From NCBI RefSeq assembly GCF_964188315.1, contig NC_135658.1, forward strand, positions 75,702,001 to 75,766,000: a stretch of DNA of 64,000 bases. The letters are read 5' to 3'. The DNA comes from Podarcis muralis (taxonomy: Eukaryota). Numbering within the stretch: the stretch's first letter is position 1; each line of letters begins with the position of its first letter. This document shows positions 3,406 to 62,603 of the stretch, in pieces. The notes beneath the pieces are model-generated. The model was given only the letters and a program-made list of their open reading frames with translations. It was not told the DNA's origin and searched no databases. The position numbers were made by a program, and so were the translations under genes.

Positions 3406-3790
3406 GGCAAACCCCCCACACGCGCTTGGAGAATGGAGCGCCCAGACCGCCTGAACCGAAAAGCGGCAGCGCCGGCGCAAGCGGCAACCTCCGCGTTCCC
3501 GCCCCTTCCTTCCTTCCCTGGGAGGCGGCCCGGCTCGCTCGCCCGGCCAGGAGAAAGGCAAAGAGGCGGGGACTCGGCGGCCAGGCCTCCTTCCTGCGCC
3601 CAAGCAAAGCCGCCCTCTTTCCTTCCCTCATAAATGCAGCCTGGCGCGCGCGCTCGTTTGGGAACCGCCCCCTGTCCATTTTCTTCCCCAGGGGAGAAAG
3701 CAAAGGGCTGCGCGCGCGCCCAGGCAACCCCAGCCCTGTCTACTCAGGAGTCGTCCATGAATTCAGTCCGGCTCGCGCCCAAGTGTGTAG
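2950..3790 (-). promoter_or_regulatory. CpG island / RNF149 promoter
   Basis: Very GC- and CpG-rich tract over exon 1 and upstream, with GC boxes and GCGCGCGC runs, against an AT-rich background. Confidence 0.8.
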
Positions 3791-5632
3791 GATCGCAGCC
3801 TAAAACTGCAGTCCCGACACACCTGGGAGTAAGCCTCGCTGAATTCAATAGGACTCTCTTCTGGGTAGGTATGATCAGGGTTATAATAATAATAATTATT
3901 ATTATTATTTATGATTTATACCCTACCCATCTGGCTGGGTTTCCCCAGCCACGCTGGGTGGCTCCCAACAAAATATTAAAAACAAAAAAAATCAAACATT
4001 AAATACTTCTCAAGTTGTCCCTTGGGCTGTATACATGATGTATGTTTAAATAATAAATCAATTTCCCCTTTCCCAAGTACAGTATGTTGGGAACTGAAGT
4101 TTATCCATCAAAGCTACAACTCCCAACAACCTTTCCAAACTACAGTTCCCAGGATTCTTCTTCTTTGTGTGTGTGCTGGGGGAGATGTTATTTAGTTATG
4201 CGACACTTGATTCCTGGCGACTGTCCTTTAAGGGTGCTGGCAATTGTAACTGTGAGGCGATAGCTCTGTTTTCCAGGACTCTTGGCGACGTCATGTACTT
4301 TAAATGTATGGTGTGGATGTATCCCTAACATTTAATTGGGGGGGGGGGGATATATGCTAGAAATGAGTATCTCTAGGTGAGATTATGGCAATGTGTTAGG
4401 CATGGCCTGCCTCTGAAAATGTTCGAAAACTTCAGCTGTTGCAGCTAGTTCACTCCATCTTCTTCACAATGTAGACAGTTGCTGGGAAGCGCAAGTCAGG
4501 AGGCTGCTGTTGTGCTTCTGGGCTTCCTGTGGGCAACTGCTTGACCACATTTCTATGGCACCTTGAGAAGAATAAAATCTATCCTCCCCCTTCAGCTACT
4601 GGGCAAAAGTTACAATTACGAGTACATTTTGGCTTTATCCCAACACATAGATGGCCCTTAAGACATTTTGAAAATCCTATTATGTCAAGCAACCTGGAGG
4701 CGGGAAGACCAGCAGTGCCTGGTCCCTGCCAAACAATAAAACAGTGCACTGTCCACTGAACTATGAGCCATGGTTAACATTAGCTATGATGTACTGAAAC
4801 AACCCAAGTTCATTAACCATGGTTTGCAGTTGGCTTGCTTCAATAGACCATAGCTACACTAAGCACACAGCATGTCCAGGTCCAGACATAAGAAATCAAT
4901 GTCCACTGAAAATCAAAGCAAAAGCTTCTAATAATCTCATATTGCAGAAAGAGAAGAGAGTGGGGTGTCCATAAGCCCAACACTAAGGCTCACAATACCA
5001 GGCAACAGTTAAATGTGAATGCAGCCACAATCTGAATGGTTAAAGCAAAGTTAAAGACTTGACTTCTTCTTTAGTCTTCCATAAAAGCATATTAGGATAC
5101 AGAGTTGTCCCAAAACCATATTGAAAGCATCTTAAGAGTATAGCATTTTGTAAGATAATTAAAGACAAATGTGTGCCTAAGGAAAGGTGGAATCTATAAT
5201 GTCAACTTAATTAAAATTCTTTACATACTTTAGGCAGCTCTTTAGAGTTTCATGTGAACAACTAGGTACAATAATATAACCACCATATATATATATACCA
5301 GCCATTTCATTTTGGGTTGCGATTCTTGTCCAGTTTCAAAAATTATAATGAGCACATCCTGTGGTATACATGTTCATAAAAATCCAGGAATATTTAAACA
5401 CCTTAAAGAAGAGTCTAGTATTATCTGTCTCCAGCCTTAACATTCATTTTCATTTCAAAGGCCCTTACTGTGTCAACCCACTCCATTTAAGAGAAATGGA
5501 GCCATTTTAAGTACTTTGCACAAAAATACTGTTAAATAAATAGTCAGTACCATAGAATATAAAACAGTTGCACCCCCCAGCCACCCCCCAAAGTAAATAT
5601 GAAACACTGAATCCTCTTATTTGGAATTTTGA

Positions 5633-40929: not shown

Positions 40930-41480
40930 CCCTGATGTTGACCCAGAAGCTGCAGCTTTGAAAAGCAGGGATGTGGCTGCTCACTGTGGCAAACGATCAT
41001 CATTATGTTACATTGCTGCTGAAAGATTTACACTGGGTGCCAATTGCCTACTGGGCTATGTTCAAAGTGCTGGTACTGGTGCACAATTCCCTATGCAGTT
41101 TGGGATCAGGAAACCTAAAAGACCCTATCACTCCTTATGTAACCCAACTGGTCACTGTGCTCTGCAAGAGAACACCAACTGCAGATACTATCTCACCAAG
41201 AGGGCTTGTTCTGCAGGACATAGGAACTGGGCTTCTAGAGTGGTGTAACCTATTCTTTGGTTTTGTATCAGACAGCCACCCTCCCACCTACTGTATTGTC
41301 GTTTTGATGCCTTCCTCTTTCAACAAGCCATTTAAGGGAAACTTTTGTCCCCATCTGTCTCGGATTTGAAATTGTTTTTATATACAGAACTGTGTCAAGT
41401 GTTTTATATATGTTTTCACTGTTGATGTTTCCAGTGTTAAATGACTTTGCGATGTCTCATAGGAAGCAATTAACAAGTGG
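40930..41480 (+). mobile_element. Degenerate L2-like LINE 3' fragment
   Basis: TLLLKDLHWVPIAYWAMFKVLVLVHNSL matches the L2 ORF2 C-terminal LHWLP motif. Confidence 0.65.
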
Positions 41481-42478
41481 AAATAAATAAACAAAACAGC
41501 CCCAGGAAGCATGTCCATTGGTCACTGATAATGGGAGTTGTAACCAACAGCATCTGGAAGACACTACATAGGCTATATACCTATGTCGTCATTAAAAATG
41601 GATATAAAATATAAACATGTGCAGTGTTGACTACTGATGATATATTCTTCAATGTGTTTTGAAGGGAGGAAAAATAAAATTAAAGGTGGGTCCCACTTCA
41701 AAATGTTTGAGAAGCACTAAGCTACAGGCCAGATTTTTATATGCTGCAATTTGACTTAAAACAAATAGTTTCTCTCCGATAAACATACGAAAACTGCTCT
41801 AAAGATCACCATGTTTTCCAATGTGAAGCTCTGCCCCACTATTTCAAGTTTTGCCAGATTAGTGATAAATTTAATTCTGCCTATAGATTAATGCCACATG
41901 AGGCGTGGGTGGGTTAAAAACCACAAGCATTGACTGATCCTTCTGTTCCACCTTAGAATATTTATGAACGTTAGCACCATTCAGCAGTCAACTGCCACCG
42001 GCAGAATATTAACAAACTGCAGCTACTATAAGGAAAGTAAAAAAATGAATTTAGTGTGAATGCACACACACACACTGCCTGAAGGGGAAGAGAACAGGTG
42101 TGCTGTTTTCAGAAAGGAAAAGATGCCAGGAGGTCAAGGACTGTGAGAACAGATGGGGAAGCGAGGAACAGAGACAGGGATCTTAGATGCGAAGAAATTG
42201 AAGAAAAGAGTACAATAAGCTGGGCAGAGAGAGACTCGGTGATTGATGGGGGAAATGATTTAACACCCACAGAACATTTAAGGGAAAGAGATACAGAAGA
42301 GGGAGGGAGTTGAAGATTTCTCTGTGAATATATTTCACTGTTTACAGATGTTGCTACCATGGTTTTGCATGAATGTTCACCTTCCTTATTACAGTACCCA
42401 TGAACTCTTAAATGCACAAATAAGCAGCTGACTATTGACTTTTCTAATAGCCTCTAAATCTTCAATTAATACAAATTA

Positions 42479-42592
<114 letters not shown>

Positions 42593-43188
42593 TTAGTCAC
42601 ACTGGTAAAATATTTGTGTGCTTCCTGTATCATCTCAGAACATTTTCAACCCATTTTCTAGTTATCACCAGGTGATGTACTCACCTGGTATTTACTGATC
42701 TGAACAGCTAGTAATTTCCCCACATTCTGTCAATCTATCTGGAATAGTTTACATGTTTTACAGTGCATTCCTCAGTACACATCATCTACTCAGAAGTAAG
42801 CCACATTAAATCCTCCCAGGAATGTGTGTTTAGGACAGCAGCCTCATGCCATTTTTCACTCGACAGTTTATATCCAGAAATACGAAATGTTTACTCAAGT
42901 ATACATTGTGCATGTCTCACAGCAGTTGTGAGTGGAACACATATTAAAACCACCATACTGAATCTCCCACTGGGTCTAATTTGAACCTAAGGCTGCCATT
43001 GTATGCAGATTTAATAGGGAGTTAATTCCCATTGAAATGAGCTGTACTGAGCAATTATGAATAGGAGTGTCCTGCACATGTCTCAACACAATATACAGTA
43101 CCAAGTGATTACTGAACAGAAGGGAAGATTTGTTTGATAAGTATGTACAAATATAACATCACTGATTCTCTATAATAAATGAATAGTA

Positions 43189-43519
43189 AAGGTAAAGGGA
43201 CCCCTGACCATTAGGTCCAGTCATGACCGACTCTGGGGTTGCGGCGCTCATCTTGCTTTATTGGCCGAGGGAGCCGGCGTACAGCTTCCGGGTCATGTGG
43301 CCAGCATGAATAAGCCATGCACGGAAACGCCGTTTACCTTCCTGCTGGAGTGGTACCTGTTTATCTATTTGCACTTTGACATGCTTTCGAACAGCTAGGT
43401 TGGCAGGAGCAGGGACTGAGCAACGGGAACTCACCCCGTCGCGGGGATTCGAACCGCTGACCTTCTGATTGGCAAGTCCTAGGCTCTGTGGTTTAACCCA
43501 CAGCACCACCCGCATCCCT
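43189..43519 (-). mobile_element. Sauria SINE with internal deletion
   Basis: 13-bp TSD TAAATG(A/T)ATAGTA with one mismatch, at 43176-43188 and 43520-43532. Confidence 0.9.
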
Positions 43520-43627
43520 TAAATGTATAGTAGTTCTACTAAAATCAGCTCCCAGAGGAGAAGAAACTGATACAGTTCCATCCGAAACCAATAACATTTT
43601 AAGGTAGCAGCAGCACACTGTGTATAC

Positions 43628-43751
43628 CTTTCCAAATGTAGCTGGATTTACTTGAGTCTGGGCCTCCTGTCTGCAGTTCTCCACATACATTTCGTACAGC
43701 AGACAACGTGGCACACTGCATCCTTCACATACAAAGAAATTGTCTGCTATC
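43628..43751 (-). CDS. RFX8: RFX8 exon 2 (helical part of the RFX DNA-binding domain)
   Basis: (W)[26 protein letters not shown]...VNPATFGK; donor AAG|GTATAC; 124 nt. Confidence 0.94.
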
Positions 43752-44586
43752 CTTGGAGGGGGGGAAAGAACCAAGAGGAAACAAATGTTATGCCTATTTA
43801 CGTTCAGAAGATGTGGGTTGCCATGTTTACTTTGAAGGACAGAAGGTTTGCAGTAGGTAAAATAAAATTATAACTTGGAATTCCTGGGTTTACAAAGCGT
43901 TTTGTGAAACAAAATTGAATTCCATAAAATTGTTAATTGTTTGAATACAGTGTCTCCATATCTCAAGGTTGTTGGTTTCACTTTGGTTGCATTGTATTTT
44001 AATGCTTTTATATTTTATTATTTCATTTTATTTCAATCTGTTTTAATCATTTAACCTTCATTTTGCCTACAGAACTTCAGTTGTTACGTGGCGTTAAAAT
44101 GTAGTAAATACATATATTTATGCATACTAGATCGTCTGGTCAGCTATTGGGGGGAACAAAATGCTAGATTCGGGGCTAATCCAGAATGGCTCTCTTCTTA
44201 TGCTTCTTACTCACTAATCTGCACACAATTCAGACTAACCGTACCTGATACCAAAAACAGAAAAACCCTATTTAATAAATAAACGATTATATATATAGCC
44301 CACCTTTTCCCCATCATGGAAATTGTGGCATCTCCCATTCAGACACTGACCAGACCAAAACCTACTTTGGTTTAAGAAGCTGGTTTCCTCAGACATCATA
44401 CTTTTGCTCTCAGCTTATGCCCAATCAAAGGTATTACACAATAGCATGGGTGTCATTAAAAGCAGGTTGGAAGGATGCCATTTGAGGCTATCTATTCTAC
44501 AACCAAAACAAACAGCACAATTATTTCCAACTTCCAAAGCTGGTGGGAACACTGAACCACATGGCAATTTGTGTTAAGAGGTTTAA

Positions 44587-44617
<31 letters not shown>

Positions 44618-44882
44618 CAGCGAAATGCCCCTTCAGGAAACACTGTGACGAAATCCATGTTTGCAAATGTAGTAATTGTGAGGGAAGGGCCACAAGCTCA
44701 TTGGCAGAGCACAGCATCTCAAGGTTGGGCTGGGAGAGAGACTTTTGCCCAGGACCTCGGAGAGATCCTACCCCTCATCAAGGCATGCAAATTCTGAGCT
44801 GCACAATACAATGGTCTGGAGGCAGCTGTAATACTGCACTGTGCAGAGTCTCTTGAAACTTATTTTTTGGGTGGGGTGGGGG

Positions 44883-46094
44883 CAGGGCCAGATTTTGGTT
44901 TGATGAGGCCCTGAGCTATTGAAGGTAATATGGCCCTTTACATGTCCAGCTGTCCTCTGTCAACAACAAATTGTTGCTGTTTTTGTGTGTTGAATATATG
45001 CTAAATGGTAATTTATGCATAGCATCTTAAAAAGTAGAGACATCACCTTGCCAACAAAGGTCCGTATAGTAAAAGCTATGGTTTTCCCAGTAGTGATGTA
45101 TGGAAGTGAGAGCTGGACCATAAAGAAGGCTGATCGCCGAAGAATTGATGCTTTTGAATTATGGTGCTGGAGGAGACTCTTGAGAGTCCCATGGACTGCA
45201 AGAAGAACAAACCTATCCATTCTTAAGGAAATTAGCCCTGAGTGCTCACTGGAAGGACAGATCGTGAAGCTGAGGCTCCAATACTTTGGCCACCTCATGA
45301 GAAGAGAAGACTCCCTGGAAAAGACCCTGATGTTGGGAAAGATGGAGGGCAGAAGGAGAAGGGGACGACAGAGGACGAGATGGTTGGATAGTGTTTTCGA
45401 AGCTACCAGCATGAGTTTGACCAAACTGCGGGAGGCAGTGGAAGACAGAAGTGCCTGGCGTGCCCATGGGGTCACAAAGAGTCAGACACGACTAAACGAC
45501 TAAACAACAACAATTTATGCATGCAACCAGTCCATGCAGAATGCAGGCACCCTATATATAGAAATGTGCAAAGCAGAGATATTTTAGGCTGAGCGAGCTA
45601 GCAGGCGGGGCCCATTACTACAAGCTAGCAGGTGGGGCACACAATTCAGACCATACCTGATACCAAAAACAGGAAACCCTATTTTAAAAATAAACAATTA
45701 TATATATAGCCCACCTTTTCCCCATCATGGAGCTTGTGGCATCTCCCATTCAAACACTGACCAGACCAAAACCTACTTTGGTTTAACAAGCTGGTTTCCT
45801 CAGACATCATACTTTTGCTCTCAGCTTATGCCCAATTCAAAGGTATTACACAATGCTATGCATGGGTGTCATTAAAAGCAGGTTGGAAAGATGCCACTTG
45901 AAGGCTATCTTCAAATGTATCATAGGAGCCTGCACAACACAAAACACTGCTGCTGTAGGTAGGTTTTATTTTATTTATCTTATATTTTGGAAATGTACAT
46001 CCAGTTGTTGTTTTTCTTTAAAAATTTTTGGAGCCCCCCAAAAAGTGAGGCCCTAAGCTGTAGCTTGTTTAGCTTATACGTAAATCAGACACTG
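44883..46094. mobile_element. hAT-like non-autonomous element with nested Bov-B and an internal copy of flanking DNA
   Basis: Imperfect TIRs CAGGGCCAGATTT and (reverse complement) CAGTGTCTGATTT; candidate 8-bp TSD GGTGGGGG / GGTGAGGA (6/8); subterminal GAGGCCCT(G/A)AGCT at both ends. Confidence 0.6.
45021..45511 (+). mobile_element. Bov-B (RTE) LINE, 5'-truncated 3' end
   Basis: Open frame ILKSRDITLPTKVRIVKAMVFPVVMYGSESWTIKKADRRRIDAFELWCWRRLLRVPWTARR is the Bov-B ORF C-terminus; ACTAAAC/CAA tail; TSD AATTTATGCAT at 45010-45020 and 45512-45522. Confidence 0.95.
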
Positions 46095-46139
46095 GGTGAG
46101 GAACAAACTTATTCACCAGTTTCCTCCTCCTGACACGTC

Positions 46140-46720
46140 CTTTATCAGGTCGCTCGCTTTCTGCCCGCCCACCCCAGAGCCAAGCAGCTCGGCTTTCCCT
46201 TCAGCTGCTGCTACTCATTGCACTCGCAGCTCGCGGGGCTAAAAAGCAGCAGGGCTGCTTATAAAGAGACGCCTCCACCTCCAGGAAATGAGGTCGTGGT
46301 GGTGCTGAGGACACCTACCACTGAGTAATGGGCTGGTATATGTTACTACAGCCGCCGGGGAAATGCTCGGCCATCCCGCTGCGCGCAGGCGTCCCGAGCC
46401 GCCCCGTCGAGGGCTCCGCGCGCGCCGCTGGTTCCTCTGCTGTTTATTTTAGAAGCCGGGCTCTAGACGTCGCGCTCGTTCGCGCCCGCCTTTGGAAAGC
46501 CGCGCCGCTCGCTGATTGGACGGCAGCAGCGCTTTGCCACCTTCCATCGATCGCTGCGCCGGCTGATTGGGCCGCTCGAGCAAACCGCGCTGGTGGGGGG
46601 AGGGAGGGCGGCCGCCGCTTCTCACGTCTGTTGCCGCAGCATTCACACACGAAGCAGCAGCTGCTGCGTTCGCTCCCACCCGCTGTGTGGCTCATAAATA
46701 AAGCAGCCGCCGTTTGGTGG
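46140..46720. promoter_or_regulatory. CpG island / RFX8 promoter with two CCAAT boxes
   Basis: CpG-rich tract; GCTGATTGG (CCAATCAGC on minus) at 46511-46519 and 46562-46570; GC boxes. Confidence 0.8.
46319..46374 (-). CDS. RFX8: RFX8 coding exon 1
   Basis: gggATGG Kozak; MAEHFPGGCSNIYQPITQ(W); donor TG|GTAGGT; phase 2 completes the conserved Trp of the DNA-binding domain with exon 2. Confidence 0.85.
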
Positions 46721-50154: not shown

Positions 50155-50226
50155 ATGGACTCTATAGAAGATATTGAATGTATTAAGCCCCTGCTTCAAT
50201 ACAAGTACGGATGCCTCGTCTCAAAG
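50155..50226 (+). CDS. ASMT: ASMT-like exon 1
   Basis: accgATGG; MDSIEDIECIKPLLQYKYGCLVSK, compared with chicken-type MDSTEDLDYPQIIFQYSNGFLVSK; donor AAG|GTATGA. Confidence 0.88.
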
Positions 50227-51962
50227 GTATGATTTGTGGGTAATGTCTATGAATAATGAAACTCTCAAGGGTTTTCTACATATGAATGGTGGTGCAGTTA
50301 AAATTCCTGTCTTTTCTGAACATGTTTGCTTCCCCTTTTGGACCTTGGCCTAGTTTTGATGTTTCCCTTTGTGGTAACATAAAGTGAAGGCACTTCCAGA
50401 CTCTTACTAGTTTGGGGTGGGATTCACGTAAAATACCAGCAAATGCAGGTTACACAATTACAGCTGATTCATTGGGAGGTTTTGCGCAACAATCCTGCTC
50501 CCCCCAAAAGAAGGATTTTTTGCAATAAGTAAAGTCATAGGAAAATGTGTTAGGAAAGGGTGAGATAACATTTTCTTTGACATAGTGCTATCTAATCTCT
50601 CTGAAAACAATAGGAATGAATTTTCAATGAACACGTCACCTGGAAGCACCCTGAGAAAACGTTAATGTGGATACAACACGTTCATTATAGCAAAATACAT
50701 TTTTAAAAATGTTTCATTAAATGTGCATTAAGTTAGTTAGTTAAGTTTTTTTATTATTATTTTACTCGATTTAGGGAAGGGGCAGCTGTCTGGTCAACTC
50801 CATTCCACATTTCAATATTTTAATTTCTGCAATGCCATTTAATCGCAGTTTAAAGGACGCAATGCTAACAATCTGCTTCCAATATATGAAGCACTGAAGC
50901 AATCAAGATCTGTTTTCCTGCTCTTATTGCATGATTTGTACACGGGAAATAGAAATAGGGAAGAAATACCAGATTCTCCATTTATTCTGTTGGAATGCAT
51001 GAGACTTGGAGAGGCTAGACAAAACACATTGCAGCCGATGACTGTCACAAATGCCTGGCTTCACCCAAACACCTTGCGCCACTCTGAATAAAAAATACAA
51101 GCAACTCGTCTGTTTTCTCGTTGCTTTTGCCCTAGAGAACTTCGTACAGAATGGCTTTATGTTTTCAGTGTCAAAACCAGGCCAGATTCCAAAAGGGGAA
51201 GCAAACGCGTTCAGAACAGACAGGTACATTTTAATTGCACAATGTCAATAGTCAAGTCTCAGGCTTTTGTGTTCAGGCATAAACTAACACGGCAATCCCC
51301 TATTGCCAGAGATTCCCAAACTGTGATCTGCAGACCACAAGCAGCCTGTGAGCTTCATTCAGGTGATCTGCAATTACTACATTCCTTTTTTTAAAGTTCT
51401 TTGGTTCCACTTTTCCTTGTACATTCAAGGTAACTGACAAAAGATGTAATGCAATGCAGTAGAAACCAGTAAGCTCTATATTTTGACTCTGTGTGCTCCA
51501 AATGAGGTTGCCCAACTGTGCATGTGCAGTGCAGACTGAAACGTACACACCACCGCTTAACTGTGTATTTCGGTTTTAAACCGGACGCAAGCTGGTTTGA
51601 AAGGAAATGCATCAAACAACAGTGTTTCTCAAAAAGCTACAAGATACAGATGGATTGCGGTTCATGTCATGTGTACTTGACTTTAAACACCAGAGGTGGA
51701 AGCGTGCTGGAGCCAGCGTAAATGGTAATGTGTACACAGCCTTTGTGTCTCAAAAACATCTTCTCTCAACATCCTTTCTTCCTTCATAATTGTATATCAG
51801 GGATGGGGAGCTCATGACCCTCTAGATATTGGACTACATATAGACTGTGGCTGATGGGGAACCCAACAGCTTCCAGAGGTCCATGGGTTAACCACCACTA
51901 TGTAGATGGCCAAAGGATGACCTGGATTCACTTTTGTAATCCCCACCCCCATTTATTTCCAG

Positions 51963-52137
51963 GTTATGTTTACTGCTGCTGAGTTGGGAGTATTTGACCT
52001 TCTTTTGGAATCAGGCAAACTCATGCCATCAACAACTATTGCTGAACGTCTGGGCACCAGCTTCACTGGGATGGAGAGGCTGTTGGATACCTGTGTGGGC
52101 TTAAAGCTCCTGCGAGTGGAGAGGACGGGCAGCCAAG
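51963..52137 (+). CDS. ASMT: ASMT-like exon 2 (dimerisation domain)
   Basis: VMFTAAELGVFDLLLESG...GMERLLDTCVGLKLL; acceptor ttccag, donor G|GTAACC; 175 nt. Confidence 0.95.
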
Positions 52138-52909
52138 GTAACCACATTGGAAGGAGGAAGCAACTCAAGTTGTTTCGAAATTCTGACTCACTTGTAGCTG
52201 AAGATGACTGTTTTCAGCCATCTTATCTGCTAAAGTGTACAATGGTGCCATCAGGACGCAACTTCAGGACAGATGCCCAAATGGAGCAGGTCTACCATAA
52301 CTGGAAGCAAATGAAGTCATGAACATTGCCATCTAAATAAGGGAGACACCTAAGAACCTAGAGACGCAGGAAGCTAATATTGGTCTATCTAGCTCAGTAT
52401 TGTCTCCACTCTGACTGGCAGTGGTTCTTCAGGGTTTCAGACGGGGTCTTTCCCAGGAGGGCTCGTGAAAGGGGTGCACATGCCAGCAGGGGCCCCCAGA
52501 CTTTTTTTAAAAGGAAAACCGGACGTTTCTGAAGAAAGTTAGAGCACAAAATGCAGAGGTAGCTCTAATGCTTCAGCACTTGGCAGGCAGCACCATTGCT
52601 GAGGATGCTTGATTACTTCATCACTGTTATTATCAGAGGCAGGAATGTTGAGCACCCTCACCTGGGACTCTCCTAGCGTAGCAGAAGACAGAGGAGGATG
52701 CAGGGGCAGGAGGATGTTTGTTAAAGCTCTGCCTGGAAGCACCTTGAAACACAAAGTACTCCGGCTAAAATCTAAGTTGTATTTTCTTAAATAATAAGCT
52801 TTTGAGCTCACCCATTAGGAAATGAAATGGAAATAACTGTCATCACAATTATAGCTAGTGAACTTGATGCTTTGCTCTTTTCTGAAGAATTACTAGTTTG
52901 TGTAGTTCC

Positions 52910-53037
52910 AGTTACAGATGGGTAGCCGTGTTGGTCTGCCATAGTCAAAACAAAAAAAATTCCTTGCAGTAGCACCTTAAAGACCAACTAAGTTAGTTGG
53001 TCTTTAAGGTGCTACTGCAAGGAATTTTTTTTGTTTT
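52910..53037. mobile_element. Penelope-like terminal fragment with a perfect 45-bp inverted repeat
   Basis: Arms 52947-52991 and 52993-53037 are exact reverse complements around a single G. Confidence 0.75.
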
Positions 53038-53212
53038 AGTTTGTGTAGGAAAGGGATGTTCACTTGGCTTCATCTCACTACTTTCAGGGCTTTAGATCAT
53101 TTATTTGTGAGTTGTTGCTTCAGACATTTTGTTCACACAGTTGCAGTTAGGGAGAAAAACTTGCCTTCTACAAAGGTGTGAAAACGTTGATTCCTTTGTT
53201 CCCTTCTATCAG

Positions 53213-53342
53213 CTCTTTATGGAAGCACAGAGTTTTCCAATCTCTACCTTGCTGAATCGAGCCCGAAGTCTCAGTATCATCATATGATGTTCTTCTCTGA
53301 AATCACATTTCTGAATTTGAACTACTTGACAGATGCAGTGAG
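53213..53342 (+). CDS. ASMT: ASMT-like exon 3
   Basis: ALYGSTEFSNLYLAESSPKSQYHHMMFFSEITFLNLNYLTDAVR; donor AG|GTAAGA; 130 nt. Confidence 0.93.
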
Positions 53343-53347
53343 GTAAG

Positions 53348-53351
<4 letters not shown>

Positions 53352-53379
<28 letters not shown>
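53352..53379. repeat. (GT)n microsatellite beside the exon 3 donor
   Basis: Direct read. Confidence 0.9.
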
Positions 53380-53381
<2 letters not shown>

Positions 53382-53713
53382 TAGCTCTGTGTACTCATGT
53401 AGAAAATGGCTCTGTGCAATGAAATGCTGAACTGCCTTTGGAAGATGATTGCCATGAGGAAAGTCAAGATGTCAGCTGTTGAAAGTGATAAAGCTAAGAC
53501 TGTGTAGACATTTTTAGCTTAAAATGCATCTAAAGTTGTTCTTTTTCTCAATTCAGATAAAAGCTGGCTTGGGAAAGAACCCCGTGATTTTTACAGCTAC
53601 AGTTTAAAAGTGTTACTCAGACTCTGGTCTCTGGCTGTTTCTGGACTCCAATTCCCATCTTTCCTTGCTAGCAAGACCAGTGGTCCGGAATGATGGGAAC
53701 TATAGTCCCAAAA

Positions 53714-54075
53714 TGCGGGGACGCGGGTGGCGCTGTGGGTAAAAGCCTCAGCGCCTAGGGCTTGCCGATCGAAAGGTCGGCGGTTCGAATCCCCGCGGCG
53801 GGGTGCGCTCCCGTTGCTCGGTCCCAGCGCCTGCCAACCTAGCAGTTCGAAAGCACCCCCAGGTGCAAATAGATAAATAGGGACCGCTTACTAGCGGGAA
53901 GGTAAACGGTGTTTCCGTGTGCAGCTCTGGCTTGCCAGAGCAGCGATGTCACGCTGGCCACGTGACCCGGAAGTGTCTCTGGACAGCGCTGGCCCCCGGC
54001 CTATAGAGTGAGATGGGCGCACAACCCTAGAGTCTGTCAAGACTGGCCCGTACGGGCAGGGGTACCTTTACCTTT
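53714..54075 (+). mobile_element. Sauria SINE, distinct subfamily, nested in a hairpin MITE
   Basis: Diagnostic differences (AAAAGCCTCAGCGCC, GCACCCCCAGGTGC, CTTACTAGCGGG); 13-bp TSD TATAGTCCCAAAA at 53701-53713 and 54076-54088. Confidence 0.9.
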
Positions 54076-54249
54076 TATAGTCCCAAAACAACTGGCAACC
54101 CAAGTCTGGGAAACACTGGTTTAAAACAATACATGTAATCGTTTGTGCAATGTATTCTGTTTTCAGGTGGTGGTGGGGAACATCTGGAATTTTCTTTGGT
54201 CATCATGCTACCTAATTTTCATTCAATTGAAACAAATTTTCTGTTTCAG

Positions 54250-54318
54250 GCAAGGAAAAAGCCCACTTGGGAAAATATATGGCGATTCATCTAGCAATTT
54301 ATTTGATGTCATTTTTAG
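54250..54318 (+). CDS. ASMT: ASMT-like exon 4
   Basis: (R)QGKSPLGKIYGDSSSNLFDVIFR; acceptor tttcag|G, donor AG|GTAAAA; 69 nt, phase 2/2 as expected; sequence strongly diverged. Confidence 0.82.
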
Positions 54319-54376
54319 GTAAAAGCAGGGTTTTGTTTTTTTTAGAGGCGGGAGTTCTTACCTTTGAGGAAATGGG

Positions 54377-55178
54377 TGTTTGCTTGGACAGGCGGAGTCC
54401 CCCCAACCCCAGGCGACCCCCGAGTGGAATAATGACTCAAGACAACGTGCTATGGGATTAAAACTGGCCACAACTTTATTAAGTTTCAGATGTAGGGAGA
54501 CCTTGGCTCAGGCATTGGGCGTTTATCCTTCCCAGTCCCCAGCTGGGGATCTGGGAGACATCAGTGTTATCCAGAGTGTGTGGGGATTGGGCTGGCTCTG
54601 GAGAACATATGTTCAAGCAGAGAGCCCTCCCCCCGTTTCGCTGCCGTTGGAGGGGAGAACAATGACAACCTCTCGGCGTATGGCCAATGCCTCCCCTCAA
54701 CGGGGAACCCTGTATCACCGCCGCAAGGGGGGTGTGGGTCACTGGTTCATGCCCCGCCCCATTTAGGAAGATAAAGGATTCCGCCCAAGGCCTGAAACTG
54801 CCAAAGTTGTGACGTTTTGCTACGGGAAAGGCAAAACCTGCCAGTGCAGGAAAATTCCTTTCTGGCCCTGACGTAGCAGCACCAGCGCACCTGTGGAGAA
54901 GAGGTTAATCTGCAAAAGAAGACTTAACTGAGGGAGGGCAGGGTGGGAGAAGCTCTGGAGCCGACTGACGCTTCACAGGTAAGATTCACTTTCTGTTGTG
55001 TGGGCAGGGTGGTCCCTCCCCTTACCTGGCCATTCCCCTGGCAACGCCTCCCCTGGCGGGATTGGGCGATTGGCTGAGGTAGGCGGAGACCTCCAGGTAT
55101 CCAGCCTGGGGAGGATGAAGCCAGCCCAAACTACTAGGAGTCGCACTGGGATCTGGGGGGGCTTCGCTTGACAACACA
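54377..55178 (-). mobile_element. Putative LTR-like insertion (boundaries uncertain)
   Basis: Abrupt GC-rich block starting TG and ending CA, with AATAAA on minus (CTTTATT near 54474); no clean TSD found. Confidence 0.35.
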
Positions 55179-55251
55179 AAAGGCACCCCCCATTTGATGT
55201 GGGGAGCGGTCATTCTTGTCAGACTGAACAATTGTGCAATTGTAGGAAACA

Positions 55252-55642
55252 TCTCTGGGAAACGATGCCTTATGAGGAACAGCTAAGGGAGCTGGGCATG
55301 TTTAGCCTGGAGAAGAGGAGGTTAAGGGGTGATATGATAGCCATGTTCAAATATATAAAAGGATGTCATATAGAAGAGGGAGAAAGGTTGTTTTCTGCTG
55401 CTCCAGAGAAGCGGACACGGAGCAATGGATCCAAACTACAAGAAAGAAGATTCCACCTAAACATTAGGAAGAACTTCCTGACAGTAAGAGCTGTTCGACA
55501 GTGGAATTTGCTGCCAAGGAGTGTGGTGGAGTCTCCTTCTTTGGAGGTCTTTAAGCAGAGGCTTGGCAACCATATGTCAGGAGTGCTCTGATGGTGTTTC
55601 CTGCTTGGCAGGGGGTTGGACTCGATGGCCCTTGTGGTCTCT
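55252..55642 (+). mobile_element. CR1 LINE, short 3' fragment
   Basis: [26 protein letters not shown]...HMSGVL* and ATTCTATG tail. Confidence 0.95.
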
Positions 55643-55935
55643 TCCAACTCTATGATTCTATGAATGTGCATACTATCCAGACGTCCTCCATTGGCCCCCT
55701 TTCTGGCATTTCTAGTATTTCTCCAGCAGTGCTGGGAACAATGTTTTCAGTGGCCTTTGCCTGGGATTTGCACATCCTGGGCCAATTCTGGTTGGATTTC
55801 AGTCACAACTGGTTAGAGCACTTCAGTCACCCAGACACCATGGGACTGGATGCAATGGGGCTCTTGCAGATGACTTATTTATTGAGCACTTCGGTTGTTA
55901 GGAGCATTCCTGTTTGTCTGGTTGTGGGGAGATTA

Positions 55936-56177
55936 CCGTATTTTCTGCTCTATAAGACTCACTTTTTCCCTCCTAAAAAGTAAGGGGAAATGTGTGTGCT
56001 TCTTATGGAGTGAATGCAGGCTGCGCAGCTATCCCAGAAGCCAGAACAGCAAGAGGGATCGCTGCTTTCGCTGCGCAGCGATCCCTCTTGCTGTTCTGGC
56101 TTCTGAGATTCAGAATATTTTTTTCCTTGTTTTCCTCCTCCAAAAACTAGGTGTGTCTTATAGAGCAAAAAATACAA
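55936..56177. mobile_element. pogo-type MITE with a perfect internal 31-bp hairpin
   Basis: TA+CCGTATTTTCTGCTCTATAAGAC / GTCTTATAGAGCAAAAAATAC; hairpin arms 56035-56065 and 56075-56105. Confidence 0.8.
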
Positions 56178-56422
56178 TGAACATTCTTCCTGCATCTTTC
56201 CTGATTTTCTTGCAGGCTGTTCATACATCCTTCCAGATAATCAGGTTATTCCTTCCACACATTTCAGTTTATTTCCCCATCATTTTCCAAACTGCAAAAA
56301 AAAAATCAGTTTCTTTTTTAAAGTGGGTCTGTTGCACTGGAACATTTTATTTCATTTTAATTCCGTAAAACTGAATTTCCCAGTATGCTCTTCAGTCCCT
56401 CCTGTAAACAATGACAGTATAG

Positions 56423-56500
56423 AGGTGTCATATATAGCTTCAGGTGTCATATATAGCTTCAGGTGTCGTATATAGCTTCAATAAGTCATATATAGCTTCA
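56423..56500. repeat. Minisatellite, about 4 copies of 19-bp AGGTGTCATATATAGCTTC
   Basis: Units start at 56423, 56442, 56461 (one substitution) and 56480 (variant). Confidence 0.9.
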
Positions 56501-56676
56501 GGCCAAGAATTTCCTGAAATCATTCCTTCCGGCACAGCGGTTGACATAGCAATTAGGGCTTCTTCGTGTTTGCCCAGAGCGTGATTGTGTGATTGAGAGT
56601 CAAGCCCTACATTACAAATCAGGCTGCACCTGGGTATTGTTTCTGCTTACCTGCCAAAGTCATTTTGAATCTACAG

Positions 56677-56795
56677 GTCAGAGGGCGAGATGAAAAGGTT
56701 CTCTCAGAGCATGAATTCCAACTGGCATCTGTGCGGCAGAGATGTGATGGCTGCCTTCGATCTTTCTCACTTCCCACTCATTTGCGATTTGGGAG
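56677..56795 (+). CDS. ASMT: ASMT-like exon 5
   Basis: SEGEMKRFSQSMNSNWHLCGRDVMAAFDLSHFPLICDLG(G); donor G|GTGAGT; 119 nt. Confidence 0.95.
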
Positions 56796-57165
56796 GTGAG
56801 TTCCAGACAGGAGCAAGTTAAAAAGGGCTCAGCTGTCTTTCTTTTTCTGCCTGTCAACATCATGTGGGTGTCTTGTGTGTGCCCTATTCTGGAACAGTTT
56901 AGTCATTAACAGCAAAAAGATTCAAAACAAGACCACAAAAATTCCCAAGATGGGTGATAACAAGAAGGAACATATTGTTTCTGCTCTCCTGTTGAAAACA
57001 TCCTTCAATGGTATTACTCTATTTGCCTCCCAGCTGTTTTCTTCTATTAGTTTTCATATGCCAGGACATGTTGAGTAATTTTTTTTGGTCAAGTTCATCC
57101 TCTTGTCCTGCAGCATTCTTCTCCTTGACCTGTCTCTATCTGTTTTGAATCTGTTCATTCTAACC

Positions 57166-57301
57166 TAGTATTTCGCAAACTTGGGTCCCCAGCTGTTTTT
57201 GGATTACAACTCCCATCATCCCTAGCTAGCAAGACCAGTGGTCAGGGATGATGGGAATTGTAGTCCAAAAACAGCTGGAGACCAAAGTTTGGGAAACACT
57301 G
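57166..57301. mobile_element. Hairpin hAT-like MITE
   Basis: Ends (C/T)AGTATTTCGCAAACTT / AAGTTTGGGAAACACTG; internal ACAACTCCCATCATCCCT / AGGGATGATGGGAATTGT palindrome. Many degenerate relatives occur in the window. Confidence 0.75.
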
Positions 57302-57786
57302 GCTCTGTCTCCTCCCCAAACTTGACATCGAGGGTTATCCTTGCTAATCATTTCTGCTTATCCTTATTCTACCTGCAGTCTTTCCCCCGCCCTCCTTGTA
57401 CGCAATGAATTGTGGTTGCTTTCCCATGGTAATATCCCAATCTTATAGTTTGATTTTGAAATGTTCTATTCTATGCTATGCTACTCCAAGCTATTATGTT
57501 ACGGTGGGGAGAGAATATGGATGCCATAAATAAATAATAAAATATTGCTCCATTGTATTGTGTTCACATATTTTGATCTGCTTATATCCTGAATAATCTG
57601 TGGCACAAGTTCAATCCTGTCAAGTCCTTGAAGCTACTCAGGTGGTGATGTGTGTCCCTGCCTATGAAACGGTTGGAGAGGCACTTACCTGAGGTGATGT
57701 CCTGATATTTTGCACAGGAGTGTTTGAAAGAAGCTTTGAGATGCACAGAAGTTTTCATTTTTGTTTTTCCTTGTTCTCCCTTGAAG

Positions 57787-57927
57787 GAAGTGGCTGCGGC
57801 TTGGCTAAAGAATGCATTGCAATGTATCCAAACTCTACGGTGACCATTTTCGACTTACCCAATGTGGTGGAAATGGCAAAGAAGCATTTCGTATCCCCAG
57901 AAGAACACCGGATTACTTTCCATGAGG
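57787..57927 (+). CDS. ASMT: ASMT-like exon 6
   Basis: (G)SGCGLAKECIAMYPNSTVTIFDLPNVVEMAKKHFVSPEEHRITFHE(G); donor G|GTAACT; 141 nt. Confidence 0.95.
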
Positions 57928-58036
57928 GTAACTGTGGTTTGTTTTGATGTGTCATTACCAGGGATACCATTTTCTAGGGGCTGAGCCCTCCCCCCCATAT
58001 TTTTGGGGAGGGGGCCGGGATTCTCCCATGTTCAAA

Positions 58037-58307
58037 GGAGGAGGAGGAGGAAGAAGAAGAGAATAATAATAATTTGGATTGGATATCCCGCTTTATCACT
58101 ACCCGAAGGAGTCTCAAAGTGGCTAACATTCTCCTTTCCCTTCCTCCCCCACAACAAACACTCTGTGGGGTGTGTGGGGCTGAGAGACTTCAGAGAAGTG
58201 TGACTAGCCCAAGGTCACCCAGCAGCTGCATGTGGAAGAGCGGAGACGCGAACCCGGTTCCCCAGATTACGAGTCTACCACTCTTAACCACTACACCACA
58301 CTGGCTC
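58037..58307 (-). mobile_element. Squam3-like SINE
   Basis: Same family as 22583-22837. Confidence 0.88.
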
Positions 58308-59223
58308 AGGTAGAGGAGGAGGTGGAGGCGGAGGAGGCTAAGCACCTCACAGCTCCAGTGACTAATTCCTTCTCCTCCTCTACCTGTTGCGGAGAGGAAG
58401 GAGCAGAGAACCAGTTGTGGTGGTGGGAAGAGGAGGAGGACCCCCGCCCCCAGACATTGAAGCTGCACTGCCACCATGTTTGGCTCCTCCCCGGCTCCTC
58501 CCAATGTCTTGACATCACACGTTCGACGTTGGGACATTGCCCCCTCCATTCTCGCTCGCATAGATGCCAACTCCCCGGGACCTTGGGTGCCCAAGCACCC
58601 ACAAAATTACCCATGAAGGGGCTGGGCACCCGCAAATTTCAGTGCCAGGGCCATGCACACTGCATGTCACCCACAGTAACAGGGCCAAGCTGGCACTCCT
58701 GTTCCCTCAAAAGTTGGCACCTCAGATCATTAGATCATCTTGGAAAAGAAAGGAGGTATGGGTAGACCTGAAACATCCCATACCTTATTATTCACCTACT
58801 AGAGAGTAAAATGGATTCAGAACAAAATCCAAGTGTGGTTGTGCTTTGAGCGGTGAATTCTGCTTCATAATTCTGCTTAATCCTTTTGTGTTAGATAATA
58901 GTCATATCCATGCCTTACATTTAAATCTCTCTTTTACCACTCTAACAGTCGAAGAGTCCTGGGAGCTTGGTTTGTTAAGGCTGCTGATCTTACATAACTT
59001 CAGTTCCCAGGCACTCTTAGCAAACTGTGGCGCCCAGAACTCTTTGAGGGGAAGAATGTCCTTTGAACGTGCCTTGAAGTTATGGTATGTAAAAAGCCTT
59101 AGAAATCAAGAATGACATATTCTGCTAGCACCAGCTTTATAACCAGGGTATTTTTGAAGGGTAGAGCTCAACTATTTAATTGAACCCCTTGCTTTAATTT
59201 ACCATCTACCCATTTTATTACAG

Positions 59224-59346
59224 GGGATTTTTTTAAAGACCCAATTCCGGAAGCTGACCTCTATATTTTGGCTAGAATCCTGCATGACTGGGACGACGAG
59301 AAGTGTGTGCAGCTGCTAAGCAGACTCCACAAGGCCTGCAAGCCTG
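59224..59346 (+). CDS. ASMT: ASMT-like exon 7 (catalytic His-Asp)
   Basis: GDFFKDPIPEADLYILARILHDWDDEKCVQLLSRLHKACKP(G); donor G|GTACGT; 123 nt. Confidence 0.96.
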
Positions 59347-60787
59347 GTACGTGTGTTTATAAGGCGGGACTGGCCAAAACTGCAGCTGTGGTTGGCAATA
59401 AGTGCATACCCTCCAACATTTCTCTGTTGAAAATAGGGACGTCCCATTCCATAATGATAATTTTACTATTTATACCCCACACATCTTACTGGGTTGCCCA
59501 GGCCACTCTGAGCAGCTTTGAATATATATAATAACATAATAAAACATTAAACATAAAAAACCCTTCTCTAGACAGGATTGCCTTCCGATGGCTATCGGGT
59601 TGGATAACTCCATACCCGCCAACATTTCTCCAATGAAAATAGGGACGTCCTAAGGAAAAGTGGGGCATTCTGGGATCAAATCAGAAACCAGGACAGCTTC
59701 TCTAAATCAGGGGTGTCCCTGGAAAATAGGGACACTTGGAGGGTCTGTAAGTGAGCCAGAGCTCACTGTATGCATTGCCTACAGAAAGGTTTTAAAACAT
59801 GTCTTGGATTGGGTCAAGGTTGGGGTTTCACTTGTAGGTGCTTTGAGTGTCCTGGATGAACAGAAAAAGTGGGACTGAAATGTTTTCAAAAATAAATGTA
59901 GACTTTGGCCCAAAGTTGGGAAACATGTATGTGCACAGTCATGGCTTGGGCCTTGGAACAGATAGCCCCGTTCAAGTCCTAGTTATTCTGAGCAGTCCAG
60001 AGACCAGAGGCCTCAATCATTAACTCATCTGTTGACACATTGGCACCTACAGTGAGATCTCAATGCTTCTGATTATTTTCTGGTGCTTGACGCTCCATCC
60101 CGCTTCCAGTCTGCCACTATAGTCCATTGGCTCCTCCTGCCCAGGATAAGAAAATACCAGTAAGATCTGGGACTTGTAGTTGTTGTTGATGATGATTTTA
60201 TTATTTATACCCCGCCCATCTGGCTAGGTTTCCCCAGCCACTCTGGAGAGAGTGTATATATGATAGGGAGGCATCATGTCTCCCTCTGTAGCTCATACTA
60301 CAAATCTTAGCATTTGCTGCATAAGTGCATTCTTTCTCTTATAAAAGGGCACCTCCATCACAATCTGACTAGAATGTCACTTCTGTATCAGGGAATTAAG
60401 TTTGTCATGTTAAGGTTCTGTTGTTGTCGGTTTTTCTCATGGTAACAAGGTTCCTGTTTCATTTGTGCAACTTGCATTATCAAAATTCAGTGGCTATAGA
60501 AATTGCTGCACCTATTCTGAGCACATTTCAGGCAGGCTACTGGAGCGAAAGTGGTGGGGAAAAGAACATTCTATGAATTATAATTCACAGCCTGCTTTGG
60601 TTGCCACGTAGATCTTCCATTTTTATACAGTAGGGCAACTCAAGGTTAAACTGCTTTTCATTTGACTTGAGCTTCTGATCCCAGGATGCTTGGAAAGATG
60701 AAGCCGAGCTCTTTGAACATGCTGTCTCAAAAGAAGTAATGGTCTATCTTTCGTTTCCCTAACTTAATGAAATATACTTTGAAACAG

Positions 60788-60996
60788 GTGGTGGAGTGTT
60801 AGTGGTGGAAGTAGTTCTCAACGAGGACAGAAGTGGGCCATTGGAAGCACACCTCCAATCCATGTTGATGCTGCTTCTTACCGAAGGAAAAGAGCGAACC
60901 CCTTCAGAGTACAATGCGCTCTTCAGTGCTGCTGGCTTCAAGGAGGTTCAGCTAAAGAAATGCCAACTCTATGATGCCATTTTAGGAAGAAAATAA
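60788..60996 (+). CDS. ASMT: ASMT-like exon 8 (last)
   Basis: GGGVLVVEVVLNEDRSGPLEAHLQSMLMLLLTEGKERTPSEYNALFSAAGF...YDAILGRK*; TAA at 60994-60996. Confidence 0.95.
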
Positions 60997-61043
60997 TGTT
61001 TCCCCTGGATCATTCTTGTGCATTGTCCAGAGAATGCTAGAAC

Positions 61044-61049
61044 AATAAA
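61044..61049 (+). terminator. Candidate ASMT-like polyadenylation signal
   Basis: AATAAA about 48 nt after the stop. Confidence 0.6.
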
Positions 61050-61176
61050 ACTTGTTGTTATATCATCTATTTATCTTTCGGCTGTAGACACACGTTTATT
61101 TCAAAACACCAAAACACGACACTTTTTATTTCATAAACTCCAAGGTCCCTTGCAGTAGAGTTTGAATATCAAGATA

Positions 61177-61492: not shown

Positions 61493-62603
61493 TAGAATCA
61501 TAGAATCATAGAGTTGGAATAGACCACAAGGGCCATCGAGTCCAACCCCCTGCCAAGCAGGAAACACCATCAGAGCACTCCTGGCATATGGTTGTCAAGC
61601 CTCTGCTTAAAGACCTCCAAAGAAGGAGACTCCACCACACTCCTTGACAGCAAATTCCACTGTCGAACAGCTCTTACTGTCAGGAAGTTCTTCCTAATGT
61701 TTAGGTGGAATCTTCTTTCTTGTAGTTTGGATCCATTGCTCCGTGTCCGCTTCTCTGGAGCAGCAGAAAACAACCTTTCTCCCTCCTCTATATGACATCC
61801 TTTTATATATTTGAACATGGCTATCATATCACCCCTTAACCTCCTCTTCTCCAGGCTAAACATGCCCAGCTCCCTTAGCCGTTCCTCATAAGGCATCGTT
61901 TCCAGGCCTTTGACCATTTTGGTTGCCCTCCTCTGGACACGTTCCAGTTTGTCAGTGTCCTTCTTGAACTGTGGTGCCCAGAACTGGACATCGTACTCCA
62001 GGTGAGGTCTGACCAGAGCAGAATACAGTGGCACTATTACTTCCCTTGATCTAGATGCTATACTCCTATTGATGCAGCCCAGAATTGCATTGGCTTTTTT
62101 AGCTGCCGCGTCACACTGTTGGCTCATGTCAAGTTTGTGGTCAACCAAGACTCCTAGATCCTTTTCACATGTACTGCTCTCAAGCCAGGTGTCCCCCATC
62201 TTGTATTTTTGCCTCTCGTTTTTTTTGCCCAAGTGCAATACTTTACATTTCTCCCTGTTAAAGTTCATCTTGTTTGTTTCGGCCCAGTTCTCTAATCTGT
62301 CAAGGTCGTTTTGAAGTGTGATCCTGTCCTCTGGGGTGCTAGCCACCCCTCCCAGTTTGGTGTCATCTGCAAATTTGATCAGGATGCCCTTGAGTCCATC
62401 ATCCAAGTCGTTGATAAAGATGTTGAATAAGACCGGGCCCAAGACAGAACCCTGTGGCACCTCACTAGTCACTCTTCTCCAGGATGAAGAGGAACCATTG
62501 GGTTCGGTCAGTCAGCCAGTTACAAATCCACTGAGTGGTAGCATAGTCAAGACCGCATTTTACCAGCTTCTTTACAAGAATATCATGGGGACCTTGTCGA
62601 AAG
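61493..62603 (-). mobile_element. CR1 LINE, 5'-truncated, young
   Basis: 300-aa open frame with [18 protein letters not shown] and FADDTKL reverse-transcriptase motifs; (ATTCTATG)n tail. Confidence 0.96.

Follow-up and report, generated by a model that had tools for sequence, protein, structure and literature searches.

Does the gene at positions 50155-60996 (+) of a 64,000-nucleotide stretch of the Podarcis muralis genome (contig NC_135658.1, positions 75,702,001 to 75,766,000 of the forward strand, hereafter the window) encode one more enzyme of melatonin synthesis, or a methyltransferase with another acceptor? The question arises because acetylserotonin O-methyltransferase (ASMT) is usually regarded as a single-copy, single-purpose melatonin-synthesis enzyme, and an earlier reading of these letters, hereafter the original prediction, had proposed that the ASMT-like protein encoded here keeps its catalytic residues and has a rebuilt, more hydrophobic substrate pocket. 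Our analysis showed that this is an intact, spliced, and transcribed gene for a class-I S-adenosylmethionine (SAM)-dependent O-methyltransferase, an ASMT paralogue that belongs to a squamate-only tandem family. The residues that it has kept and replaced suggest that the product is probably an active O-methyltransferase for which N-acetylserotonin is not the acceptor, or at least not the main one.

The acceptor-pocket helix and the catalytic residues

The last exon of the window gene was aligned with human ASMT (PDB 4A6D) by phmmer, which matched residues 277-345 with E = 2e-17. The segment at 60838-60888 (+) is translated as PLEAHLQSMLMLLLTEG, where 60841-60888 are codons 295-310, and the human helix, residues 293-309, reads PLLTQLYSLNMLVQTEG. 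This alignment bore out both the substitutions and the numbering first proposed, i.e., Y299 to Q300, N302 to L303, and Q306 to L307 from human to window gene, and the RNA contigs agreed with the translated codons (60856-60858, 60865-60867, and 60877-60879, respectively, + strand, in exon 8). A further polar-to-hydrophobic change that was absent from the original prediction, Y108 to F109, was also found. The published N-acetylserotonin site, as taken from the human ASMT structure, is made up of Y108, F156, H255, D256, N302, M303, Q306, E311, and Y338 (PMC6151645, section 2.4); our lists of substrate- and SAM-site residues are second-hand, coming from that article and not from the primary human ASMT structure paper. 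From this site, the window gene keeps F157, the catalytic His-Asp, M304, E312, and Y338. Residues 300, 303, 304, and 307 share one helix (295-307), and their i, i+3, i+4, i+7 spacing corresponds to a single helical face. The intact 345-aa frame that had been described, with W165, D211, G236-D237-F238, R253, and H256-D257-W258, was present in full in the rebuilt gene, and G188 was retained as well.

Every sampled canonical ASMT, from sharks to birds, keeps the motif QLYSLNMLVQTEG and Y108, and so does the human enzyme. Because the motif is kept from sharks to human in the sampled canonical enzymes, the departure of the helix in the window gene is real and no matter of chance; the chicken helix quoted in the original prediction was correct (P0253). 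The 303/307 pair differs between close relatives, being Leu/Leu in P. muralis, Met/His in P. lilfordi, Ile/His in P. raffonei, and Met/Leu in Lacerta agilis. At codon 303, P. muralis has TTG, P. raffonei has ATT, and Lacerta, Sceloporus, and Phrynosoma have ATG; codon 307 is CAT in most orthologues and CTT in P. muralis and L. agilis. Judged from these orthologues, the exact L303/L307 pair is a recent state.

The 345-aa protein matched the Pfam profile PF00891 Methyltransf_2 with 254.5 bits (profile positions 2-210 of 210) and the dimerisation profile PF08100 with 83.7 bits, and a Pfam scan of the 345 aa detected no Maf domain. An AlphaFold2 model built from an 84-sequence alignment reached a predicted local distance difference test score (pLDDT) of 92.9 and a predicted template modelling score (pTM) of 0.88. 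Its best match in the PDB was human ASMT 4A6D, with a template modelling (TM) score of 0.95, a root-mean-square deviation of 2.0 Å, and 50% identity, followed by bacterial and plant O-methyltransferases with TM scores of 0.79-0.88. Pfam profiles, the fold of a Rossmann-type SAM domain with a helical dimerisation domain, SAM residues, and catalytic His all place the protein among the class-I SAM-dependent O-methyltransferases.

A squamate-only clade with replaced substrate contacts

With two relatives as queries, the matches included hundreds of squamate proteins that bear the name ASMT-like, with several to a genome. In a maximum-likelihood tree of 104 sequences, 78 formed one squamate-only clade with a Shimodaira-Hasegawa-like approximate likelihood-ratio test support of 100 and with gecko sequences at its base, and the other clade held the canonical ASMTs of squamates, tuatara, turtles, crocodilians, and birds. 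The window gene fell inside the squamate-only clade, separate from the squamate canonical ASMTs, and not in the canonical orthogroup. When sharks, ray-finned fishes, coelacanth, and amphibians were added in a larger tree, the squamate clade (support 88) grouped with sauropsid ASMT (support 99), apart from the ASMTs of fishes and amphibians. A tree uniting all squamate sequences was not rejected by the approximately unbiased (AU) test (p 0.47-0.48). Duplication in the squamate stem would be the simplest reading of these trees, and an older origin is also compatible with the AU result.

Copy numbers per genome were taken from the best 120 matches of each search, among which alleles, isoforms, and assemblies may be mixed; read in this way, the sampled genomes contain 1-8 copies of the clade, in tandem arrays beside an RFX gene. 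At least eight sampled copies were found in Anolis sagrei, at least seven each in Sceloporus undulatus and Elgaria multicarinata, at least five in Pogona vitticeps, at least four in Lacerta agilis, at least 4-6 in colubrid and elapid snakes, and at least two in Eublepharis macularius. The window gene sits in an early-branching group with single orthologues in Podarcis (three species) and Lacerta, at least one in Rhineura, and three Elgaria copies, and sequences of Sceloporus, Phrynosoma, and Hemicordylus lie near this group in the tree. The gene is not a novelty that stands alone among lizards, and to this extent the original prediction was not supported in the form given: it is one of at least 78 sampled squamate ASMT-like genes, and it already has a RefSeq annotation. 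As for Rhineura floridana, the annotated protein P0177 (345 aa; L003:10001-39694) is apparently stitched together from two tandem copies: exons 1-5 map to the first, and exons 7-8 to the other, which lies about 17 kb beyond it. At the identity cut-off, exons 3 and 6 could not be placed, and this species may hold one more gene of the group than is annotated.

The 78 clade members were compared with canonical sauropsid ASMTs at the site residues. Asn at position 302 was found in 0 of 78 members versus 18 of 18 canonical sequences, and Gln at 306 in 1 of 78 versus 16 of 18. Residue 302 of the clade is Leu in 34 members, Ile in 19, Met in 9, Lys in 6, Val in 6, and other residues in the rest, never Asn, and position 108 is Tyr in 5/78. 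The counts point to a loss of N302 in the common ancestor of the squamate ASMT-like clade. The SAM site is near-invariant in the same sequences (G187 78/78, D210 77/78, G235 76/78, P243 78/78, R252 74/78), and column entropy within the clade was 1.68 bits for the N-acetylserotonin site, 0.34 for positions of the SAM site only, and 1.20 elsewhere. The positions that are invariant in canonical ASMT and most variable in the paralogues cluster, in human numbering, at 104-117, 129-167, 256, 295-306, and 336-337. In agreement with the claim that residues related to catalysis are kept and contacts to N-acetylserotonin replaced, the ten-sequence orthogroup of the window gene is invariant at E62, F157, H256, W258, M304, E312, and Y338 and at the five SAM-site positions tabulated (G188, D211, D237, R253, and W258), and varies at 109, 110, 113, 300, 303, and 307.

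These counts bear on the possibility that the gene still encodes an enzyme of melatonin synthesis, that is, a subfunctionalised ASMT copy used in other tissues or at other times, with Leu, Met, or His tolerated in the pocket. The conserved His-Asp-Trp, M304, E312, Y338, and F157, together with a fold nearly superimposable on that of human ASMT, would be expected of such a copy. However, N302 and Q306 are kept in the sampled canonical ASMTs and replaced in 78/78 and 77/78 of the paralogues, Y108 is replaced too, and the replaced positions are still changing between close species, something unexpected for an enzyme with a fixed substrate. We consider this explanation unlikely.

The catalytic His255 is replaced in 17 of the 78 paralogues (Tyr in 9, Phe in 5, Cys in 2, Ile in 1), and D256 is Asp in only 33/78; part of the squamate family may be catalytically altered or inactive. 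The window gene itself retains the His. A protein with a binding or regulatory role and no catalysis of its own, such as one that forms a heterodimer with canonical ASMT via the dimerisation domain, would account for the clade members without the catalytic His and for the retention of that domain in the window gene. Such a protein would have no need of the catalytic His, G188, D211, D237, R253, and W258, all of which the orthogroup keeps, and this role seems highly improbable to us.

Variation was also analyzed among the four lacertid orthologues, where 45 positions differ. Twelve of the 30 positions hypervariable in the clade are among them (odds ratio 5.7, p = 9e-5), an enrichment that is partly circular, as the 30-position list was itself drawn from the 78 sequences, which include the lacertid ones. 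At the nine published substrate-site positions no significant enrichment was detected among these four orthologues, with 2/9 varying (p = 0.33).

The canonical ASMT of the same species

P. muralis also has a canonical ASMT, XP_028581473.1 (P0316; 346 aa; named "acetylserotonin O-methyltransferase"), in which N302 and Q306 are kept, and which clusters at 90% with its canonical counterparts from Lacerta, Zootoca, other Podarcis, and Rhineura. The existence of this copy ruled out that the window gene is the genome's sole ASMT. In Lacerta agilis, canonical ASMT adjoins an AKAP-17A gene at 69.1 Mb, and the orthologue of the window gene is found at 72.8 Mb of the same chromosome; in P. raffonei, the respective positions are 72.67 and 76.52 Mb. 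The distance between the canonical ASMT/AKAP17A locus and the orthologue is then about 3.7-3.9 Mb in these two other lacertids. The window gene lacks the AKAP17A neighbourhood of canonical ASMT, and its orthologues adjoin an RFX gene and other ASMT-like genes. Together, the canonical N302/Q306 copy in the same species and its place beside AKAP17A in L. agilis upheld the proposal that the window gene is a paralogue and not the melatonin ASMT.

Selection and expression

The ratio of nonsynonymous to synonymous substitution rates (dN/dS) was estimated in a set that left out P. lilfordi, Zootoca P0287, Rhineura P0177 (mixed-copy model), and the neighbouring paralogue P0320 (unmappable with the shared exon lengths). 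Between L. agilis and P. raffonei, dN/dS was 0.47-0.62 for the orthologue of the window gene (dS 0.07-0.09), whereas it was 0.10-0.18 for canonical ASMT (dS 0.06-0.09); in crude nonsynonymous:synonymous counts for this pair, the paralogue gave 35:17 and canonical ASMT 8:18 (Fisher p = 0.0035). Values for the window gene and its orthologues were 0.50-0.69 between P. muralis and P. raffonei (dS 0.04-0.06), 0.49-0.68 in the independent pair of Sceloporus and Phrynosoma (dS 0.08-0.11), and 0.27-0.37 in the deep pair of P. muralis and Sceloporus (dS 0.57-0.72). By Nei-Gojobori counts, pN/pS was below 1 with p = 5e-4 in two pooled independent shallow pairs and p = 1e-18 in the deep pair. Purifying selection acts on the window gene, but about five times less strongly than on canonical ASMT. 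Purifying selection as such would also be expected of a copy retained for melatonin synthesis, but the much stronger constraint on canonical ASMT in the same genome argues against that role.

Expression was examined at positions 55100-61090 of the window with the reads and contigs from four RNA runs, and for two of these 6-12% of the reads were covered. Run X1 yielded one contig of 659 nt that lies on 56687-56793, 57785-57926, 59223-59345, and 60787-61065, i.e., exons 5-8 joined as modelled, and ends about 20 nt past the AATAAA at 61044. Run X3, which belongs to a different study, gave one contig that joins exons 5-6 and another that spans the last exon (60835-61041). No differing letter was found in the helix region of the X1 or X3 contigs. 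Outside the helix, M201L and T206M (window 57822 and 57838; codons 201 and 206) are seen in the X1 contig together with synonymous changes, and these differences were taken as allelic.

The data of this section allow a further explanation to be weighed, in which the gene is a redundant duplicate that drifts under relaxed constraint, with little or no function, and is heading for loss. It would fit a dN/dS about five times that of canonical ASMT, the 20 amino-acid differences between Podarcis congeners and the five between two RefSeq versions of one species, the loss of the catalytic His in 17/78 clade copies, and the scarcity of transcripts: k-mer depth was low, at 5-8, and no exonic reads were found in two further runs, X20 and X22 (one of them bulk and the other single-cell), in the 6-12% of each run that was read. 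Nevertheless, P. muralis, P. raffonei, L. agilis, and Sceloporus all retain an unbroken reading frame and the full set of 14 splice sites, the same holds for exons 2-8 of Phrynosoma, and the P. lilfordi orthologue is full length at the protein level. Moreover, the deep dN/dS departs from neutrality, the SAM-binding and catalytic residues are invariant in the orthogroup, and the transcripts are correctly spliced. Taken together, this makes the drifting duplicate quite improbable. A pseudogene was ruled out by the intact frame, the splicing, and a dN/dS below 1.

The original prediction had named three findings that would speak against it: a genome with no other ASMT, canonical squamate ASMTs with the same L303/L307, and a copy without transcripts and with dN/dS near 1. 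None of them was found, because a canonical copy exists, no canonical squamate ASMT sampled shares L303/L307, and spliced RNA is present in two studies along with a dN/dS significantly below 1 in shallow and deep pairs.

A candidate methyltransferase for less polar acceptors

If the window gene indeed encodes an O-methyltransferase with a changed acceptor, the product would be a homodimeric enzyme that binds SAM as ASMT does, with His256 as the general base that deprotonates the acceptor hydroxyl. The putative pocket residues Phe109, Leu303, and Leu307 would leave the pocket short of three hydrogen-bonding side chains, and owing to this loss a less polar phenolic or indolic acceptor would be favoured. 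Several points weigh against a changed acceptor. That N-acetylserotonin binding has been lost is inferred from the identity of residues and a second-hand contact list; both the raised dN/dS and the enrichment of lacertid variation at former substrate-site positions are as compatible with simply relaxed constraint as with adaptive diversification; and transcripts of the window gene are scarce, as described above.

At the level of the family, the clade could represent a radiation of small-molecule methyltransferases with diversifying acceptor specificity, comparable to that of the plant and bacterial members of the fold. It is quite possible, and we put it forward tentatively, that this is an undescribed squamate radiation of ASMT-derived O-methyltransferases, with 1-8 copies per genome, at least as old as the gecko split, with fast-diversifying pockets on a held core, that forms a small-molecule methylation system for indoles, phenols, and other hydroxylated lipophilic compounds. 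If so, the radiation would serve chemical signalling, xenobiotic handling, or a methoxyindole pathway other than that of melatonin, and the window gene would be an early-branching, single-copy member of it. A full-text literature search, with thin coverage of subscription journals, brought up no article about lizard or snake paralogues of ASMT, and squamate paralogues were not mentioned in the searched passages of a melatonin-gene study that used squamate ASMT as an outgroup. The squamate ASMT-like family points to vertebrate small-molecule O-methylation chemistry outside what has been assayed, and both reptile melatonin genetics and automated annotation can mistake its copies for ASMT.

Gene structure and neighbourhood

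The gene model was obtained by tblastn with ASMT homologues and splice-site reading, which gave eight exons on the + strand with canonical GT-AG at all junctions and a stop-free spliced frame of 1038 nt for 345 aa. The protein is identical (0/345 differences) to RefSeq XP_028581475.2 (P0309), which is already in that database under the generic name "acetylserotonin O-methyltransferase-like [Podarcis muralis]". Exon 1 (50155..50226) contains the ATG, codons 1-24, and a GT donor, and matches XP_028581475.2. Exon 2 (51963..52137) encodes the dimerisation domain, with PF08100 on residues 11-96 and E62 at 52074-52076. In exon 3 (53213..53342), F109, equivalent to human Y108, lies at 53290-53292 and F110 at 53293-53295, in a helix that is hypervariable in the paralogue clade. 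Exon 4 (54250..54318), also placed by tblastn and splice-site reading, encodes RQGKSPLGKIYGDSSSNLFDVIF, and exon 5 (56677..56795) carries F157 and W165 as well as the first part of the SAM motif DLGG (D186 at 56786-56788). The exon 5-6 junction, at which 56793 is joined to 57785 (GT..AG, cut +2), was confirmed by spliced RNA contigs of runs X1 and X3. Exon 6 (57787..57927), likewise present in spliced RNA contigs, has the SAM-binding D211 at 57852-57854, and exon 7 (59224..59346), covered by the X1 contig, has G236-D237-F238, R253, the catalytic H256 (59283-59285), D257, and W258. Exon 8, stop codon included (60788..60996), holds the pocket helix P294-G310 at 60838-60888, E312, and Y338, and it is followed by the polyadenylation signal AATAAA at 61044..61049 (+), with the RNA contig stopping at 61065.

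The older RefSeq version of the protein (P0311) has five residue differences, L132V, Q159H, D177N, M201L, and S268T, most of which match other Podarcis. Along with the M201L and T206M of the RNA contig, these differences suggest that nonsynonymous polymorphism is high in P. muralis or that the species comprises divergent lineages. The Lacerta agilis entry XP_033003499.1 (320 aa) is annotated without exon 1, and an intact exon 1 with ATG and GT donor was located at L002:7754-7825, 2.2 kb upstream of the annotated start, which gives a full 345-aa orthologue. An intron of the same L. agilis gene contains a 163-aa AhpC-TSA/Redoxin frame (L002:13644-14135, -), probably a peroxiredoxin retrocopy.

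The locus of P. raffonei is ordered as an RFX-family gene (-), a spacer of about 4 kb, the orthologue, about 9 kb, a 346-aa ASMT-like gene, and a 345-aa ASMT-like gene. The window is collinear with it, which places the RFX gene at about 41056-46400 (-) by comparison with L001:1-6021. This gene, whose product in P. raffonei has 605 aa and matches the Pfam profiles RFX_DNA_binding and BCD_RFX, is head-to-head with the ASMT-like gene and about 3.8 kb before the start codon of the latter. Downstream, 0.6 kb from the gene, a 300-aa frame at 61573-62472 (-) matched RVT_1 with E 6e-13, and its C-terminal part is nearly identical to 55172-55588 (+) in intron 4, a segment with no Pfam match; both are fragments of long interspersed nuclear elements. 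Several intronic repeats of the window gene show very high RNA depth. At 2845-3800 the window is G+C-rich and has long open frames (262 and 317 aa) in two + frames; a CpG island, or another gene's first exon, may lie here.

Comparison with known methyltransferases

Canonical ASMT, represented by human 4A6D and P. muralis XP_028581473.1, has the Pfam domains, fold, SAM residues, and His-Asp-Trp in common with the window gene, and the same eight exons with the same lengths and phases, except for a last exon of 209 nt in the window gene and 212 nt in the canonical one, a difference of one codon. Identity of the window protein is 50% to human ASMT and about 62-64% to lacertid canonical ASMT. Nevertheless, the window gene departs from canonical ASMT in tree position, in the AKAP17A neighbourhood, and at residues Y108, N302, and Q306, where it has F109, L303, and L307: it belongs to its own squamate-only clade, lies at an RFX-side locus, carries Y108F/Y299Q/N302L/Q306L, and has a nonsynonymous rate about five times higher.

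Two further vertebrate relatives have been described. Teleost ASMT2 is an extra ASMT copy beside the pineal and retinal one, with a reportedly wider tissue expression; it comes from the teleost genome duplication, lies by fgfr3/letm1, and keeps Y108, N302, and Q306 (PMC6151645). In our tree, the sampled ray-finned fish ASMTs, none of them labelled ASMT2, form one clade far from that of the squamates, which would speak against an orthology of the squamate genes with ASMT2. The second is ASMTL, a Maf-ASMT fusion of the pseudoautosomal region, whose ASMT-like C-terminal domain has a changed N-acetylserotonin site, with Y108H, N302S, and E311Q (PMC6151645). The window protein has only Dimerisation and Methyltransf_2 domains, and F109, L303, and E312 at the corresponding positions. 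That it is ASMTL was ruled out by the missing Maf domain, even if the RefSeq name invites this confusion.

Duplicates with changed contacts were also found in other lineages. Four turtle copies (P0206, P0221, P0228, and P0235) have N302I or N302R with Q306 kept and lie inside the canonical clade, outside that of the squamates. Spea bombifrons P0024, with helix PLLTHMESVPILLLTEG, Y108F, and H255F, is an independent copy outside the squamate clade, and Protopterus P0055 and Lampetra P0034 are independent ASMT-like copies in which 302 and/or 306 are changed. These turtle, Spea, lungfish, and lamprey duplicates number one to few copies each. From such comparisons, the loss of N-acetylserotonin contacts after duplication seems recurrent.

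The plant and bacterial Methyltransf_2 families (COMT/IOMT-type enzymes; RedM, PigF, DtpM, and DnrK) share the fold with the window protein at only 21-26% identity. They combine a conserved SAM site and catalytic His with acceptor pockets that diversify among tandem duplicates, as in the squamate clade. However, they are enzymes of secondary metabolism and none is a vertebrate family, and the likeness is one of pattern, not of descent beyond the superfamily.

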